DNA of 64,000 nt from Magallana gigas (lineage: Eukaryota), in contig NC_088857.1 of assembly GCF_963853765.1 (NCBI RefSeq), positions 56,544,001 to 56,608,000 on the forward strand, read 5' to 3'. Below, piece by piece: positions 4,481-37,049 of the stretch (position 1 is the stretch's first letter; each line of letters starts with the position of its first letter). The notes beneath the pieces are model-generated. The model searched no databases, was not told where the DNA came from, and saw only the letters and a list, made by a program, of their open reading frames with translations. The translations under genes and the position numbers were made by a program.

Positions 4481-5463
4481 TTAGGTTTTTTTCCCCAAAC
4501 ACTAAAACAATTAAAGCGACTGTTTAACATTTATATAAAATAAGCGAAGAAAATTGAAAATAATTCTTACAAAAATATGCTCTACTTATATAATTAAATT
4601 CATATTAAATGCATGCAACATAAAATTAATTTGACCAGAATTATGGCCTTCGTTGCTTTTATGATTTTCAATTTTTCCATTTGCAATATATTCATGCTTA
4701 ATTAACTTATAATTCTATTGGTCATCCAAACGATTAACTATATTTATCAAGTCAAAAGCAAAAAATAAAGCTAAGAATTTTTGTTACGTAATCAAGAGCC
4801 GTTTTGAGGTTTTTGTTTACATCTAGGTTGGTGAATAGAAAAACGTGTATTAAACAAATTAAGTGACAGCTCTAGAAACTAAAATTATGTTCATAAAAGG
4901 CTTCCAGATATAAAAAAGAATCTGACGAAAACAAAGAGTACATGTGTGTCTACAAAAACATGACTCTAGCTTCATTACTTGACAACTGGCCTTAAATTTT
5001 TGCTGAACATATGAAATTCGTAAGGGAAGCATCGTTAACATTAACAATTTAAAAAATATATATATGTCTTGTTTTGAGGGTATAAGTACGGATTCTCTCT
5101 ATAGTTTCCGGCGACTTACAACCTCCTTTTGACCTGTTTTGGTCCGAGAGGACAGAAATCCGTACTGAATTACACTATTGTTAGAACCTCGATGGTAACC
5201 ATTCACAAAATATCGCTTGGCGGTTGTATTGATATTGTTGTTAACCTTAAAAACACGGTTGTGTCAATAATTCTGTACGATTTGCCTTTCTCAACGGAAA
5301 ATATATTTAAAAACCAGCAATGTTAAAAAGTTCACCAGGATATAAAATTAGGTTGGTACGTACGTGATCAAATAATCTGAAAAAAACATCCGGCTTATCG
5401 ATATTTGATCACGTGAATGACCAAGTTCACATCCCGATGAACTTTTGAACATGGTGGTTATTA

Positions 5464-30912: not shown

Positions 30913-31508
30913 GAAAGATACCACTGAGTCTGTGTCAGGTGTTTCATATTTGGATATTTTACTGGAAATGGACATTGATGGTAACCTAACAACAAAACTT
31001 TATGATAAACGCGATGACTTCAATTTTTCTATAATAAACTTTCCTTACTTATGTAGCAATATACCTTCATCACCTGGATATGGTGTGTTTGTCTCTCAGT
31101 TAATTCGATACACAAGGGCATGCTCTTCGTATGAACAGTTTCTAAGGCGAGACAAGCTACTGTCAAACAAGTTGATAAAACAGGACTATCAACAGTCTCG
31201 TTTGAAGTCATCTTTCATAAGTTCCATGGTCTATACAACGACCTTGTCAGCAATACAATCTTCCACTGGGTCGCATGCTGACTGACGTTTTTCATTCTAA
31301 TTTGTAGACCATAATTAATCACCTAATTGTCTACGGAGTTTTCCGTTTTTATGCCGATTACGAAAAGAGCACACGGCCGGTGTGACCGGTCAGCAGAGGA
31401 TGCTCACTCCTCTATCTTTTTATAGGTCCGTATTGCTCTGCTTTGAATTTGTATTTCGTTTTATGGATTTTTGAGATGGTTGACAGTTTGTTTTTGTCAT
31501 TTTTTCAT
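30913..31508 (+). mobile_element. Penelope-like (Naiad-type) retroelement, 3' fragment: RT C-terminus plus pseudo-LTR
   Basis: Encodes DTTES..SYLDILLEMDIDGNLTTKLYDKRDDFNFSIINFPYLCSNIPSSPGYGVFVSQLIRY, with no endonuclease after the RT. Followed by the tail motif cacggccggtgtgaccggtcagcagaggatgctcactcctc. Clade assignment is from memory of Naiad RTs. Confidence 0.78.
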
Positions 31509-32613: not shown

Positions 32614-35600
32614 ATGGAAAGATCTCTCATCATCTGTGTCGTTTTGTTCATTGGATTTTCTTACGCTGCTGTTCTACCCAACCAGAAAGGTAAAGACAGA
32701 ACAAGCTTGTTAATTCATCAAGTGATTTTAGAAAAAAAAACACCAAATATATTGTGTAATGACTTGTTTTAAGACACCCCTCTGTTTTAATTTTGATCCA
32801 TTCTGGATATTTACGATGTGGTCATTTTCTCACTTCAGATGACAGTGACCTTGATACAAAGGTAAATACAAAGCTAAAATATACACCACGATTACATACA
32901 TGTACTAGTAGGAGTTATTACAGACATAAAATATAATAAAATGTTTGTAAATAATGTGAAATACCTTACTATTGCTACTTAAAACAAATTCAAAGCGTAT
33001 TTCTGCTCAGGTTTTCTGACAGATGATGTTAATATTTGGATGTAAATCAAACAAGCAACTGTATAAGACTATTTGTTCTCTTTTGCATGCAGATTAAGAA
33101 CCTTGATTCAAAGGTACATGTAGATATTCTACTTTGGTATAGTTAAACTCAACTTGAATGATTATTTAGACAAAAATTCTAAAAACTATATCTAGATCTT
33201 ATTACAACATACTAGTACTTGTTAAGTATATAAACTTTTGTATTTGAATTGTATTTGCAGATATCTCAGCTCCGGGATCTTGTAAGTATATATATAAGTA
33301 TATATATCTATATATTGTGACTAAATCAACACGGAAAGCCTATTTCGGTAAAAGTTCGCTACTCGAACGATGGTGAATTTTTAAGTTGTTCACTAGGTGA
33401 ATGAAATCAAGAACGCAACTGAAAAGGGATCCTCCCAACATGCCTCGAGTGGTTCTAGCGCCAAGGAAAGCGACATGGCAGCCACTAGTTCGTCTGTGAA
33501 AGCACACACACGTGGAGACTCGGCGTTATCACCCGAGGAAATAACCCTCCTAAAGGTATCTGACTCAGTCCCATAAAGGTGGTCCACAAACAGGTTAAAT
33601 ATCGGGTTTCCTCCCATAAACCGACCTTTGCTATAAATAAAACAAAATTACGCAATAATCTCCTGTTTGTTTGCAGCTTAGAGGTGCAGATTTATGGGTA
33701 AAAATCTAGGTTATTTATCCCTGAAATTACGTCAGTAAAAAGCTACGAAACCAATGTAAAATTCTTAAATTAAGATTATAAAAAGGTTTTTATGACTTGC
33801 TCACCTTCCAAAAGAAAAACAATTATTTACCAAATCATGCATTCCTATTAGCAAATCACAAATATTTTGAATACATTTTAATCAAAAGAACTAAAGTTGT
33901 GTCACTTAACAGTTTTATTCAAATCTATTACATCCTTTAAATGAGAAAAGGGATAGCGCTGAATCTTCAAGAAATATCTTTACTTATCTATAGAAACTGA
34001 AGGACACGCTGGAGGAGGAAACCGCCGAGGAAAAGGACGGTCTGAAGATCTTCCAGGAGTCGGTCAAACACGAGAGAAGTAAAAAGAGTTTATAGAAATA
34101 ATGTAAACAATTCATTTGTTTTCTATGTGCCAACCTTAACACCCAGATTTAGGTTAATGTTTACTATAGTGCCCCCAGTCTCCCTGCCTTTGAAAATAAT
34201 CCCTCATGTGTAATGTTTTTAAAATATCTACATGATCTTTAGCTTGTTAGCTTCAATTTACTTAACAAAATTTTAAATGCTATTTTTTCATTATTATAAA
34301 GGACCGGAGCATGTCGGGACATTCCTTGACCGACCAATTCCGGAACAGGAAGTACCAGACACGAGCCGCGTGAAGCAGCTGGCGGCCCTTATGTCCCAGA
34401 GGTCTCAGTCCACACCGGAAGGTATCAACTTAAACACAAAACCAAATAGTTCTCTTACCGTCTTCAATTTGTAACATTTCCTAGTAGAAATTCTAGTTCA
34501 GTAAATGACATGTACATACTGCATAGCTTCTGAACGATGTTTCAGGTATGCAATAATGTTCTGTTACCTTTTTTTAAGAAATCGAGGGTAATGGATTTGG
34601 AAAATTCCATGAAACAGGTAATTTTTTTTTCTCTCTTTACACGTGTCATTTATAATGCTTATGATCACAAGAAATTATTTGTAAACTGTGTAGAACTAAT
34701 TTGATGTCCAACAACATACATGCACAACAGTCAAACTACATGTACTACGACCAATTACAGCTGGCGCGGATTGTCTAACCTTTCTCTTGTTGGGGCGGGG
34801 AGCTGTAGCAGTGTCTTATTTTTCTTAACTATGAAATATATTATAATCAATCAATCCGGCATTTCAAAAGGGGTCCAACCACAACCCCCTAACCCCCCCC
34901 CCCCCCACCCCACCCCGTAACATTTAAATCGGCACATATGTTGTGAAAGCAGAATACGTGCTCAATAATAAATTCCACTGTTCAAATGCTCCGTTGGACG
35001 AACTCAGAATAAGTAATCAATCACTTTTAGCGTACAATTAGCAACATATTTTAGTACTTTACTAATTTGAAGGTATCAATTTCAACAAAAGGCAATTCAG
35101 ACAAGGGGTTAAGAATACTTACATTGTATGTTAAAACACCTAATGAAAGTATTTTAAAAAAGTTATGCGCTTGATCCTCAGTAATTTTTTTTTATTGGAA
35201 TGAGCTACGCCGCTAGCATACCTATTTCTACTTTAAAACATTAAAAAACAATGTGTAATATGTCGTATTGCCCGCATACACAGCTAATTTACTTTTACTT
35301 GCTAGATAATCCTGCTGCTGGTCATAAGAATACATTTAGGGAGAACCGTACGTATTTTTGTAATTTTCCAATTTTCCCTAATCTATCATCTAAATGTTTC
35401 CAGTCTCGATTTTGGTGTTATTTGTTTCTTTTTAATCAACCATTCCATGGCAAGACTGCGTAGAGATTACACCGTTGATCTATATGTGGAACTATGTTTG
35501 GTATACTATATCCAAAACACATAACTAATGGTCATATATTCAACAATGAAATGAGAATGTCTGCACATAATAATACGCTCGTATTGAATTTGCATGCACA

Positions 35601-36056
35601 TTCTAAAATATTAAGGATAGAAAGTCTAACTAAATCTTCTAGGGATTGAGTCCTTTGAATTCTTTTTTCTCCAGTTCTTAATGTTCTAGTGGACAGGCTT
35701 TTGGAGGACACAGATCTTTTGCTGCGGAAAGGATTTTCATTGGATGATGTGCTGAAAAACTTATCAGGAAAAGGTAAGAGAAATAGAACCAAAACTTCGG
35801 ATGGAATGAACTTCATGAAAAATGTATTTAATGGTTGAATGATTTTAAAATGTGTAATTATATTTATTGGCCAGGGTTATTATAAAAACGTTTGCATACA
35901 TCGTATCAAAATTTCAATCAAATAGTACTACGTTCCGACTTTATTTACTTAGACACTAAACATATTGGTTTCTTTTTTATTGCAGCTCAAATGGAGAGAG
36001 AAAGAACTTCATTAGAACAAGCGTTAGAAAAACTACTGGATCAAAAGCACATATAA
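32614..36056 (+). CDS. Secreted acidic helical/coiled-coil protein, 184 aa, unknown function. Exons 32614-32689, 32839-32861, 33093-33113, 33261-33281, 33994-34078, 34302-34421, 34579-34617, 35675-35773, 35986-36056
   Basis: Nine GT-AG exons join in frame (555 nt): MERSLIICVVLFIGFSYA-AVLPNQKDDSDLDTKIKNLDSKISQLRDLKLKDTLEEETAEEKDGLKIFQESVKHERRPEHVGTFLDRPIPEQEVPDTSRVKQLAALMSQRSQSTPEEIEGNGFGKFHETVLNVLVDRLLEDTDLLLRKGFSLDDVLKNLSGKAQMERERTSLEQALEKLLDQKHI*. Clear signal peptide; no Cys in the mature part. Confidence 0.8.
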
Positions 36057-36117: not shown

Positions 36118-36249
36118 NNNNNNNNNNNNNNNNNNNNNNNNNNNNNNNNNNNNNNNNNNNNNNNNNNNNNNNNNNNNNNNNNNNNNNNNNNNNNNNNNNN
36201 NNNNNNNNNNNNNNNNNNNNNNNNNNNNNNNNNNNNNNNNNNNNNNNNN
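36118..36249. other. Assembly gap (132 N)
   Basis: Run of N about 60 bp downstream of the stop codon of the secreted coiled-coil gene. Confidence 1.
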
Positions 36250-37049
36250 CAAATATTATTTTCATCTACTTTTTGTACAATGTTCAATTTTTTAACAACG
36301 ACAACTCTGTTTAATATTAAACTCAATATATTTTGAAATAAACGGTAGACAGATCTAAATTGTTTGTCGTTGTTTTTCTGCTTAAGCAGTTTTTTATCAA
36401 CACTTACTGAGAGAAAGTATGAGAGGAAAAAGCTCAAATTTACGAGTCTTGTCACAACTGCTCTTTTCCCGATTGATATTGAGAGAAAATCGTTGTTTAC
36501 TAGATTTTATTTGGTTATTTGAAGCAAAAAAATTAGGAAAACGTATGTGAAACAATTATATTATTATTTACGCCTAAAATTTAGACTTGATTTGTCTTGA
36601 TAAAGAAGATAAAAGTGAAAATTTTAAAGCGGTCTTTTATTATTGTTTTACTAAAACATCATAAAAGAAATGTGTGTATGTAGAAAATTTCATATTACCA
36701 GCGTTTCTATGTTAAAATGGGATACTCAAAAATTCAGTTCAATATCCTATCCCACACAATCACTGGTTAAAAATCAATCAATTAGTCAGTCAATATACAA
36801 ATTCAAGTTACGAGGTTTAAATAAAAAAAAAAAAAAAAAAAAGTTACGATGTTGTCAAACATGCTTAGGTTATGTTAAGTCTGGCACTTTTACTTTTTTT
36901 AGGTTTAAGGACAGAAAGAAATAATTAATTATTTTCATTTATCTATAATTTGAGTTAAATACGTTGCCGGGGATTTCTTTCGCACTTACTCTAATCGAAA
37001 AATTCAATGGAGTTATACCCCCTCCCTCCCCAAAAGAATTGAGCTATTG

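Follow-up and report, generated by a model that had tools for sequence, protein, structure and literature searches.

A one-heptad cassette micro-exon in an uncharacterized gene of true oysters

Can a coiled coil be assembled, and its length set by splicing, from exons that each encode a single heptad? The question is raised by a 64,000-nt stretch of DNA from the Pacific oyster, Magallana (Crassostrea) gigas (contig NC_088857.1 of assembly GCF_963853765.1, positions 56,544,001 to 56,608,000 of the forward strand; hereafter the window), in which three consecutive micro-exons of 23, 21, and 21 nt had been noticed between positions 32839 and 33281. The sequence-only reading that drew attention to them proposed that they build a coiled coil in a secreted protein, and that skipping or duplicating a 21-nt exon would change its length by exactly one heptad without disturbing the reading frame. 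We find that the micro-exons are exons 2, 3, and 4 of the single-copy gene LOC105318355, which has 11 coding exons of 76, 23, 21, 21, 159, 85, 120, 39, 42, 99, and 71 nt. All three are very probably genuine coding exons, with exon 3 being a cassette. RefSeq already lists the gene with its isoforms, under the label 'uncharacterized'; what is new is the exon-equals-heptad cassette and its loss in Saccostrea, and the present value of this is modest.

Micro-exons in transcripts and genomes

The coding part of exon 1 (32614..32689, 76 nt; this and all other exons of the gene are on the + strand) begins with the ATG at 32614, encodes the signal-peptide-like segment MERSLIICVVLFIGFSYA/AVLPNQK, and ends in phase 1. 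Exon 2 (32839..32861, 23 nt) completes the codon split by the preceding intron and restores phase 0; it encodes (D)DSDLDTK and ends at heptad position g. Exons 3 (33093..33113) and 4 (33261..33281), each 21 nt long and in phase 0-0, encode IKNLDSK and ISQLRDL, respectively, each peptide corresponding to one heptad from a to g. All three micro-exons have an AG acceptor and a GT donor, and the sizes, phases, and peptides originally reported agree exactly with the sequence.

Presence of the micro-exons in cDNA had been named beforehand as a check. Ten Logan contigs (L007-L016), derived from ten different RNA-seq runs and compared over the 5' untranslated region (UTR) and coding parts, contain an uninterrupted coding sequence of 735 nt in which exon 1 is joined to exon 2, exon 2 to exon 4, exon 4 to exon 5, and so on to exon 11, all abutting exactly. 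The absence of gaps in these contigs proves exons 2 and 4 in cDNA; exon 3 is skipped in all ten. Exon 2 matches at 23 of 23 nt in each contig and its position is conserved in four other oyster genes, and exon 4 is found in the genes of all five species, with LRDL invariant; both exons are constitutive. The index lists this 244-aa product in 47 blocks, with allelic variants in dozens more. The contigs also extend upstream, where the 5' UTR stays colinear with genomic sequence as far as 32221 at least. A 2012 oyster gene model (UniProt K1R2X1; P0033) omits both 21-nt exons (3 and 4) and differs at its C-terminus; we treated it as an old ab initio mis-model and rejected it as evidence for skipping of exon 4.

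Open AG..GT-bounded frames of 21 nt with good splice sites number about six per strand in the 64 kb of the window (about one per 10 kb), and such look-alikes are common enough that sequence alone is insufficient proof of a 21-nt exon. RefSeq includes proteins with the exon 3 peptide from C. gigas, C. virginica, and O. edulis, and in the latter two species the gene has exons of 23, 21, and 21 nt at matching positions. How readily look-alikes arise is illustrated by a decoy in the intron after exon 5 (33677-33697; LRGADLW), which has a good pyrimidine tract and a GTAAAA donor. This candidate for a fourth 21-nt exon was rejected, no isoform or cDNA contig making use of it.

The gene was traced with its exons used singly as queries against Pfam, the oyster's own genome, and a representative protein library, and then with database proteins as queries. 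Exons 5, 7, and 10 proved to be single copy in the own genome when searched exon by exon. From the representative library, the 39-residue peptide of exon 7 (34302..34421, 120 nt; PEHVGTFLDRPIPEQ...) was the query that yielded orthologues, returning genomic open reading frame (ORF) fragments and one full-length protein, C. virginica XP_022335286 (P0004, 248 aa). A word search with this protein retrieved the LOC105318355 isoforms, proteins of C. angulata, two Saccostrea species, and Ostrea edulis, and Logan transcript-derived proteins. The window exons, each compared alone, map in order and without mismatch onto the Pacific oyster protein XP_011413714.3 (P0035, 244 aa), exon 3 being left out, which confirms the Pacific oyster as the source of the genome. 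The orthologous loci of C. virginica, S. cucullata, O. edulis, and S. echinata all adjoin the same FN3-CUB gene, indicating that the fetched loci are syntenic.

Exon 3 among the true oysters

Three exons distinguish the isoforms of the gene, namely exons 3, 8, and 9, which contribute 7, 13, and 14 aa, respectively. In C. gigas, exon 3 (IKNLDSK) is included in RefSeq isoforms X3 (P0020, 238 aa) and X4 (P0023, 237 aa) and in isoform X1 of LOC105322473 from the old assembly (P0037). It is left out of the 244-aa and 230-aa RefSeq proteins and of all listed Logan transcript proteins, from which precisely those seven residues are missing. The two C. virginica isoforms, X1 (248 aa) and X2 (241 aa), differ by exactly VKSLDSK, and both are retained in the updated annotation. 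In O. edulis the corresponding peptide, VQGLDAK, is found in both of the models that include the N-terminus. The sole isoform returned for C. angulata (X2; P0028, 230 aa), the Crassostrea transcript P0048, and all models from Saccostrea are without exon 3. Presence or absence of the exon leaves both the frame and the heptad register unchanged. The proposal of a splice-tunable exon number therefore stands in part: exon 3 is present or absent, with frame kept, in isoforms of two Crassostrea species, but exon 4 is constant in every transcript-based model, and neither a duplication nor a micro-exon number above three occurs in the genes of the five species. Counted by orthologue, C. virginica and O. 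edulis have all three micro-exons, and Saccostrea retains exon 3 only as a relic.

The relics were aligned with exon 3 in the Saccostrea introns (alignment A3, columns about 355-385). In S. cucullata (L004:2560-2600) the relic encodes VDNIDS, and its final codon is a TAG stop. In S. echinata (L006, intron 2235-2675) the frame is intact (VENLNSK), with AT at the place of the GT donor. In neither species does this intron still hold a 21-nt candidate of the exon 3 kind that could be spliced. Exon 3 was thus disabled twice within Saccostrea, by two different changes. Where the exon is retained, its identity between genera is 62-76%, on par with that of exon 4, and that of the 60-nt flanks is 33-50%. 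Positions a (Ile or Val), d (Leu), e (Asp), and g (Lys) are kept across species, positions b, c, and f vary, and the Leu and Lys codons show synonymous changes. We conclude that exon 3 is a long-standing coding exon of Ostreidae; its inclusion is optional in Crassostrea and, judging by the models, seems to be fixed in Ostrea.

A separate observation concerns the origin of the exon. The last 12 nt of exon 2 (CTTGATACAAAG, 32850-32861) and of exon 3 (CTTGATTCAAAG, 33102-33113) are identical at 11 of 12 positions, with 14 of 21 identical along the full exon length, a hint that exon 3 originated as a copy of exon 2; the likeness is weaker in C. virginica and O. edulis, so that such an origin is unproven.

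The relatives that we found are all oysters. Profile searches and word searches with the C-terminal region returned no relatives outside Ostreidae, and two extra matches (P0054 and P0055) were rejected as relatives because they are intron read-through ORFs of the same gene. Searched as single exons and as full-length proteins, Pfam gave matches that were all below the gathering scores; a profile search of the PDB gave no match at E<=1, and the best score in an ESM Atlas feature search, 0.81, was at chance level. By these sequence comparisons the protein is an orphan of the true oysters (Ostreidae). Its conserved blocks are the N-terminal heptad stretch, KESDM, SPEEI (an S-x-E motif), PEHVGTFLDRPIPE, KQLAALMSQRS, and the C-terminal LNVLVDRLLEDTDLLLRKGFSLDDVL...MERER...LEQ.

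The heptad seam and its possible role

We assigned the heptad register of the N-terminal stretch, here called the seam, by anchoring it on the invariant LRDL of exon 4. This places D27-K33 in one heptad, I34-K40 (exon 3) in the next, I41-L47 (exon 4) in a third, and V48-A54 (the start of exon 5) in a fourth. Every exon border in the seam stretch falls between positions g and a, and each 21-nt exon therefore gives exactly one a residue (Ile, Val, or Leu) and one d residue (Leu). The 4-3-4-3 spacing of L, I, L, I, L that had been pointed out from the DNA is correct, and it runs on via V48 and I51 into exon 5 (33397..33555, 159 nt, phase 0-0; VNEIKNATEK...SPEEITLLK), which lies outside the stretch originally flagged. 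The start of this exon, VNEIKNA, prolongs the seam with V at a and I at d; the next a position is Asn or Thr, after which a Ser-rich acidic linker, predicted to be disordered, leads to the invariant SPEEI. The a and d residues L30, I34, L37, I41, L44, V48, and I51 are all hydrophobic in all species compared. With exon 3 the seam has seven core a/d positions (L30-I51) spanning 22 residues, or three heptads plus one residue; without exon 3 it has five (L30-I44) spanning 15 residues, or two heptads plus one residue. A run of seven positions was reached in 59 of 5000 composition shuffles of the mature protein, and no longer heptad run is found elsewhere in the protein.

AlphaFold, run with the family alignment, predicts one continuous helix over this region, extending over residues 27-59 with exon 3 and residues 27-50 without it, at a predicted local distance difference test score (pLDDT) of about 55-70. 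In these models, exons 2, 3, and 4 and the start of exon 5 encode the first helix of the mature protein. The seam thus combines two features of a two-stranded coiled coil, an unbroken heptad repeat with hydrophobic a and d positions and a predicted helical conformation. Ile at position a together with Leu at position d reportedly favors two-stranded coiled coils, a rule said to go back to Harbury et al. in 1993, and the sequence-only reading had appealed to it. In C. gigas the a residues are Ile or Val and the d residues Leu or Ile, in keeping with the rule, but it applies only loosely, orthologues having Val or Leu at a. In a parallel homodimer, the only favorable g-e' pair would be K33-D38, present only when exon 3 is included; a repulsive pair would be formed by K40 and R45 with exon 3 and by K33 and R45 without it.

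The mature protein has a mass of about 25 kDa, is acidic (pI 5.2) and helix-rich, and is predicted to contain several long helices linked by disordered segments. It has no cysteines, so any pairing would be non-covalent. The N-terminus is hydrophobic and carries a conserved G-x-SYA/A motif, and there is no other hydrophobic segment in the protein. The earlier description of the protein as secreted agrees with this signal-peptide-like segment, from which alone secretion is inferred. A conserved dibasic processing site was considered and rejected, the RR of C. gigas being KK, KV, or KA elsewhere.

We regard it as somewhat more probable than the contrary that LOC105318355 encodes a helical protein that is secreted and associates non-covalently, its N-terminal seam forming a short surface for interaction that exon 3 makes longer. 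In this proposal the seam would serve for self-association or for binding of a partner. Inclusion of exon 3 would lengthen it from about two to about three heptads and, by adding the K33-D38 pair, would reinforce a contact that is weak or absent in the short form. Exons 8 and 9 (39 and 42 nt), also symmetric cassettes, vary a linker ahead of the conserved C-terminal helices. The tuning of association by exon 3 is, taken by itself, rather doubtful. A stricter version, in which the two-heptad default is monomeric and inclusion regulated by tissue, stage, or condition gives three heptads with the favorable K33-D38 pair, enough to pass the stability threshold of a parallel dimer, would amount to a monomer/oligomer switch in a secreted protein, ancestral to Ostreidae and given up in Saccostrea; we consider it quite unlikely.

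Several observations weigh against the proposed association. All of the assembled C. gigas RNA contigs that we saw lack exon 3, the skipped form predominating in assemblies; for C. gigas, inclusion of the exon is documented solely by RefSeq models, and none of the proteins retrieved from the newest M. gigas annotation has it. The disabled relics indicate that exon 3 was dispensable in the Saccostrea lineage. The five-position run of the main isoform was reached in 1013 of 5000 composition shuffles, no more than is expected by chance. The AlphaFold models are monomer predictions of low confidence and non-globular shape (mean pLDDT 54 and 52; predicted template modelling score, pTM, 0.17-0.18). 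Only C. gigas and O. edulis have Ile at position a, the other oysters having Val or Leu. Finally, work with model peptides puts a stable autonomous coiled coil at about three to four or more heptads, so that two heptads are too short and three are near the length needed.

Some of the same observations are what would be expected of an exon in decay, which we consider a serious possibility, though one falling well short of an even chance. By this account exon 3 is old and on its way out, included at a low, non-adaptive level in Crassostrea and dead in Saccostrea; the helix would work equally well either way, and the heptad size of the exon would be a historical by-product. The account would cover the skipping of exon 3 in all Logan RNA contigs and in the newest M. 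gigas annotation proteins, the two independent disabling lesions in Saccostrea, and the exon 3 donor (GTACAT), which is weaker than the donors of exons 2 and 4. What it leaves unexplained is that C. gigas, C. virginica, and O. edulis have all retained an open frame, the acceptor and the donor, and the residues at a, d, e, and g, alongside synonymous changes. In addition, all O. edulis models with the N-terminus contain exon 3, and the updated C. virginica annotation still has both isoforms.

Predominance of the skipped form in bulk assemblies would also follow if exon 3 belonged to a neural Srrm234/eMIC or Rbfox-type programme and were included in a minority cell type. The exon has a suitable size (21 nt) and preserves the frame. 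In C. gigas, UGC is found at -9 and -5 of the acceptor, and UGCAUG, an Rbfox-type hexamer, overlaps the 3' splice site (33084-33092); in C. virginica, UGC is at -10 and UGCAUG lies 66 nt downstream. Enrichment of UGC near the 3' splice site has been described for eMIC-dependent exons (PMC8797185). Neither UGC nor UGCAUG is conserved in O. edulis, however, motifs so short are frequent by chance, and the host gene is a secreted orphan rather than a typical neuronal interaction protein; we therefore hold tissue switching of this kind to be very unlikely. That exon 3 is unreal, its RefSeq isoforms being the product of spurious alignments, is hardly credible: chance 21-nt frames do arise at the rate given above, but a homologous exon with conserved peptide and splice sites is found at the same intron position in three genera and was modelled independently in the annotations of three species.

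The nearest known counterpart in gene architecture is provided by the micro-exon genes (MEGs) of schistosomes, which encode secreted orphans from symmetric micro-exons, with variants produced by exon skipping (described in 2010, as summarised in PMC4350168). LOC105318355 shares with MEGs the lineage-restricted, putatively secreted orphan product, the arrangement of an exon for a signal-peptide-like segment followed by very small symmetrical exons, and splicing variants that differ by a few residues. It differs in how little of its coding sequence is micro-exonic: exons no longer than 23 nt account for 65 of 756 coding nt (9%), a share that rises to 19% if the 39- and 42-nt cassettes are counted, whereas the coding region of MEGs is mostly micro-exonic. 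There is no sequence similarity, the relatives all being Ostreidae, and the host is a mollusc, while MEG families are confined to platyhelminths. A further difference is the clear structural period of the oyster micro-exons, one heptad. With 9% of its coding sequence micro-exonic and no kinship to MEGs, LOC105318355 is not a MEG.

Neural micro-exons dependent on the SRRM4/Srrm234 eMIC (PMC8797185) resemble exon 3 in being 27 nt or shorter, in frame, and alternatively included, and in altering part of a helix or of a surface but not the fold of a domain; a UGC near the 3' splice site is found in two Crassostrea species. They differ in that the oyster host is a secreted orphan and in that the UGC motif is not conserved in Ostrea.

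Exons that match a structural unit have a precedent of another kind. In fibrillar collagens, 54-bp exons encode Gly-X-Y repeats in whole number. As in collagen, the oyster exon length corresponds to whole repeat units, and gaining or losing an exon disturbs neither the frame nor the structural register; the oyster unit is one alpha-helical heptad (21 nt), in contrast, and there are only two such exons and one of 23 nt. The seam itself recalls leucine zippers of the GCN4 type in the 4-3 spacing and, in C. gigas, in its Ile/Val at a and Leu/Ile at d. GCN4 has more than four heptads. The oyster seam, which is known here from sequence and monomer models, has two to three, with Val or Leu at a in other oysters and with a repulsive g-e' pair in a parallel homodimer, K40-R45 (K33-R45 in the short form). 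We found no described case of single-heptad exons in the literature on micro-exons with coiled coils or in oysters, and literature searches on the locus names returned nothing relevant.

If the cassette does alter self-association, it would be a very clean natural case of splicing setting coiled-coil length in single-heptad steps, with built-in natural comparisons in Saccostrea, which has lost the exon, and in Ostrea, where inclusion seems to be fixed. LOC105318355 also demonstrates that N-termini assembled from micro-exons exist in lineage-restricted secreted proteins of animals other than flatworms. Such micro-exons are readily missed by ab initio prediction, K1R2X1 being an example.

Remaining exons and the surrounding sequence

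Exon 6 (33994..34078, 85 nt; KLKDTLEEE...KHER) encodes part of the second predicted helix. It is followed, after exon 7, by two cassettes in phase 1-1. Exon 8 (34579..34617, 39 nt; EIEGNGFGKFHET) is not in isoform X3, in a second Crassostrea transcript, or in the C. virginica gene, where the corresponding intron has no homologue of this 39-nt GFG exon. Exon 9 (35306..35347, 42 nt; DNPAAGHKNTFREN), which like exon 5 lies outside the stretch first flagged, is skipped in the 230- and 237-aa isoforms. Both cassettes are present in the main mRNA. Exon 10 (35675..35773, 99 nt) encodes the most conserved part of the protein, LNVLVDRLLEDTDLLLRKGFSLDDVLKNLSGK, and the coding part of exon 11 (35986..36056, 71 nt) ends with a TAA stop at 36054-36056. 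The 3' UTR enters a stretch of N at 36118-36250.

The intron before exon 9 contains a long C-rich run at 34880-34916, and a poly-C run is present in the corresponding C. virginica intron (L003, about 5275-5300); the two may be a shared repeat remnant. Upstream of the gene, an open frame of 117 codons (…YDKRDDFNFSIINFPYLCSNIPSSP…) at 30932-31285 on the + strand matches nothing in Pfam and resembles a piece of a repeated element. The window carries an allele in exon 5 that reads N-A-T, an N-glycosylation sequon, at 33415-33423, where other C. gigas alleles and transcripts have N-A-N. Further allelic differences between this assembly and the older RefSeq proteins are F11L and, in exon 6, T/A and E/K.

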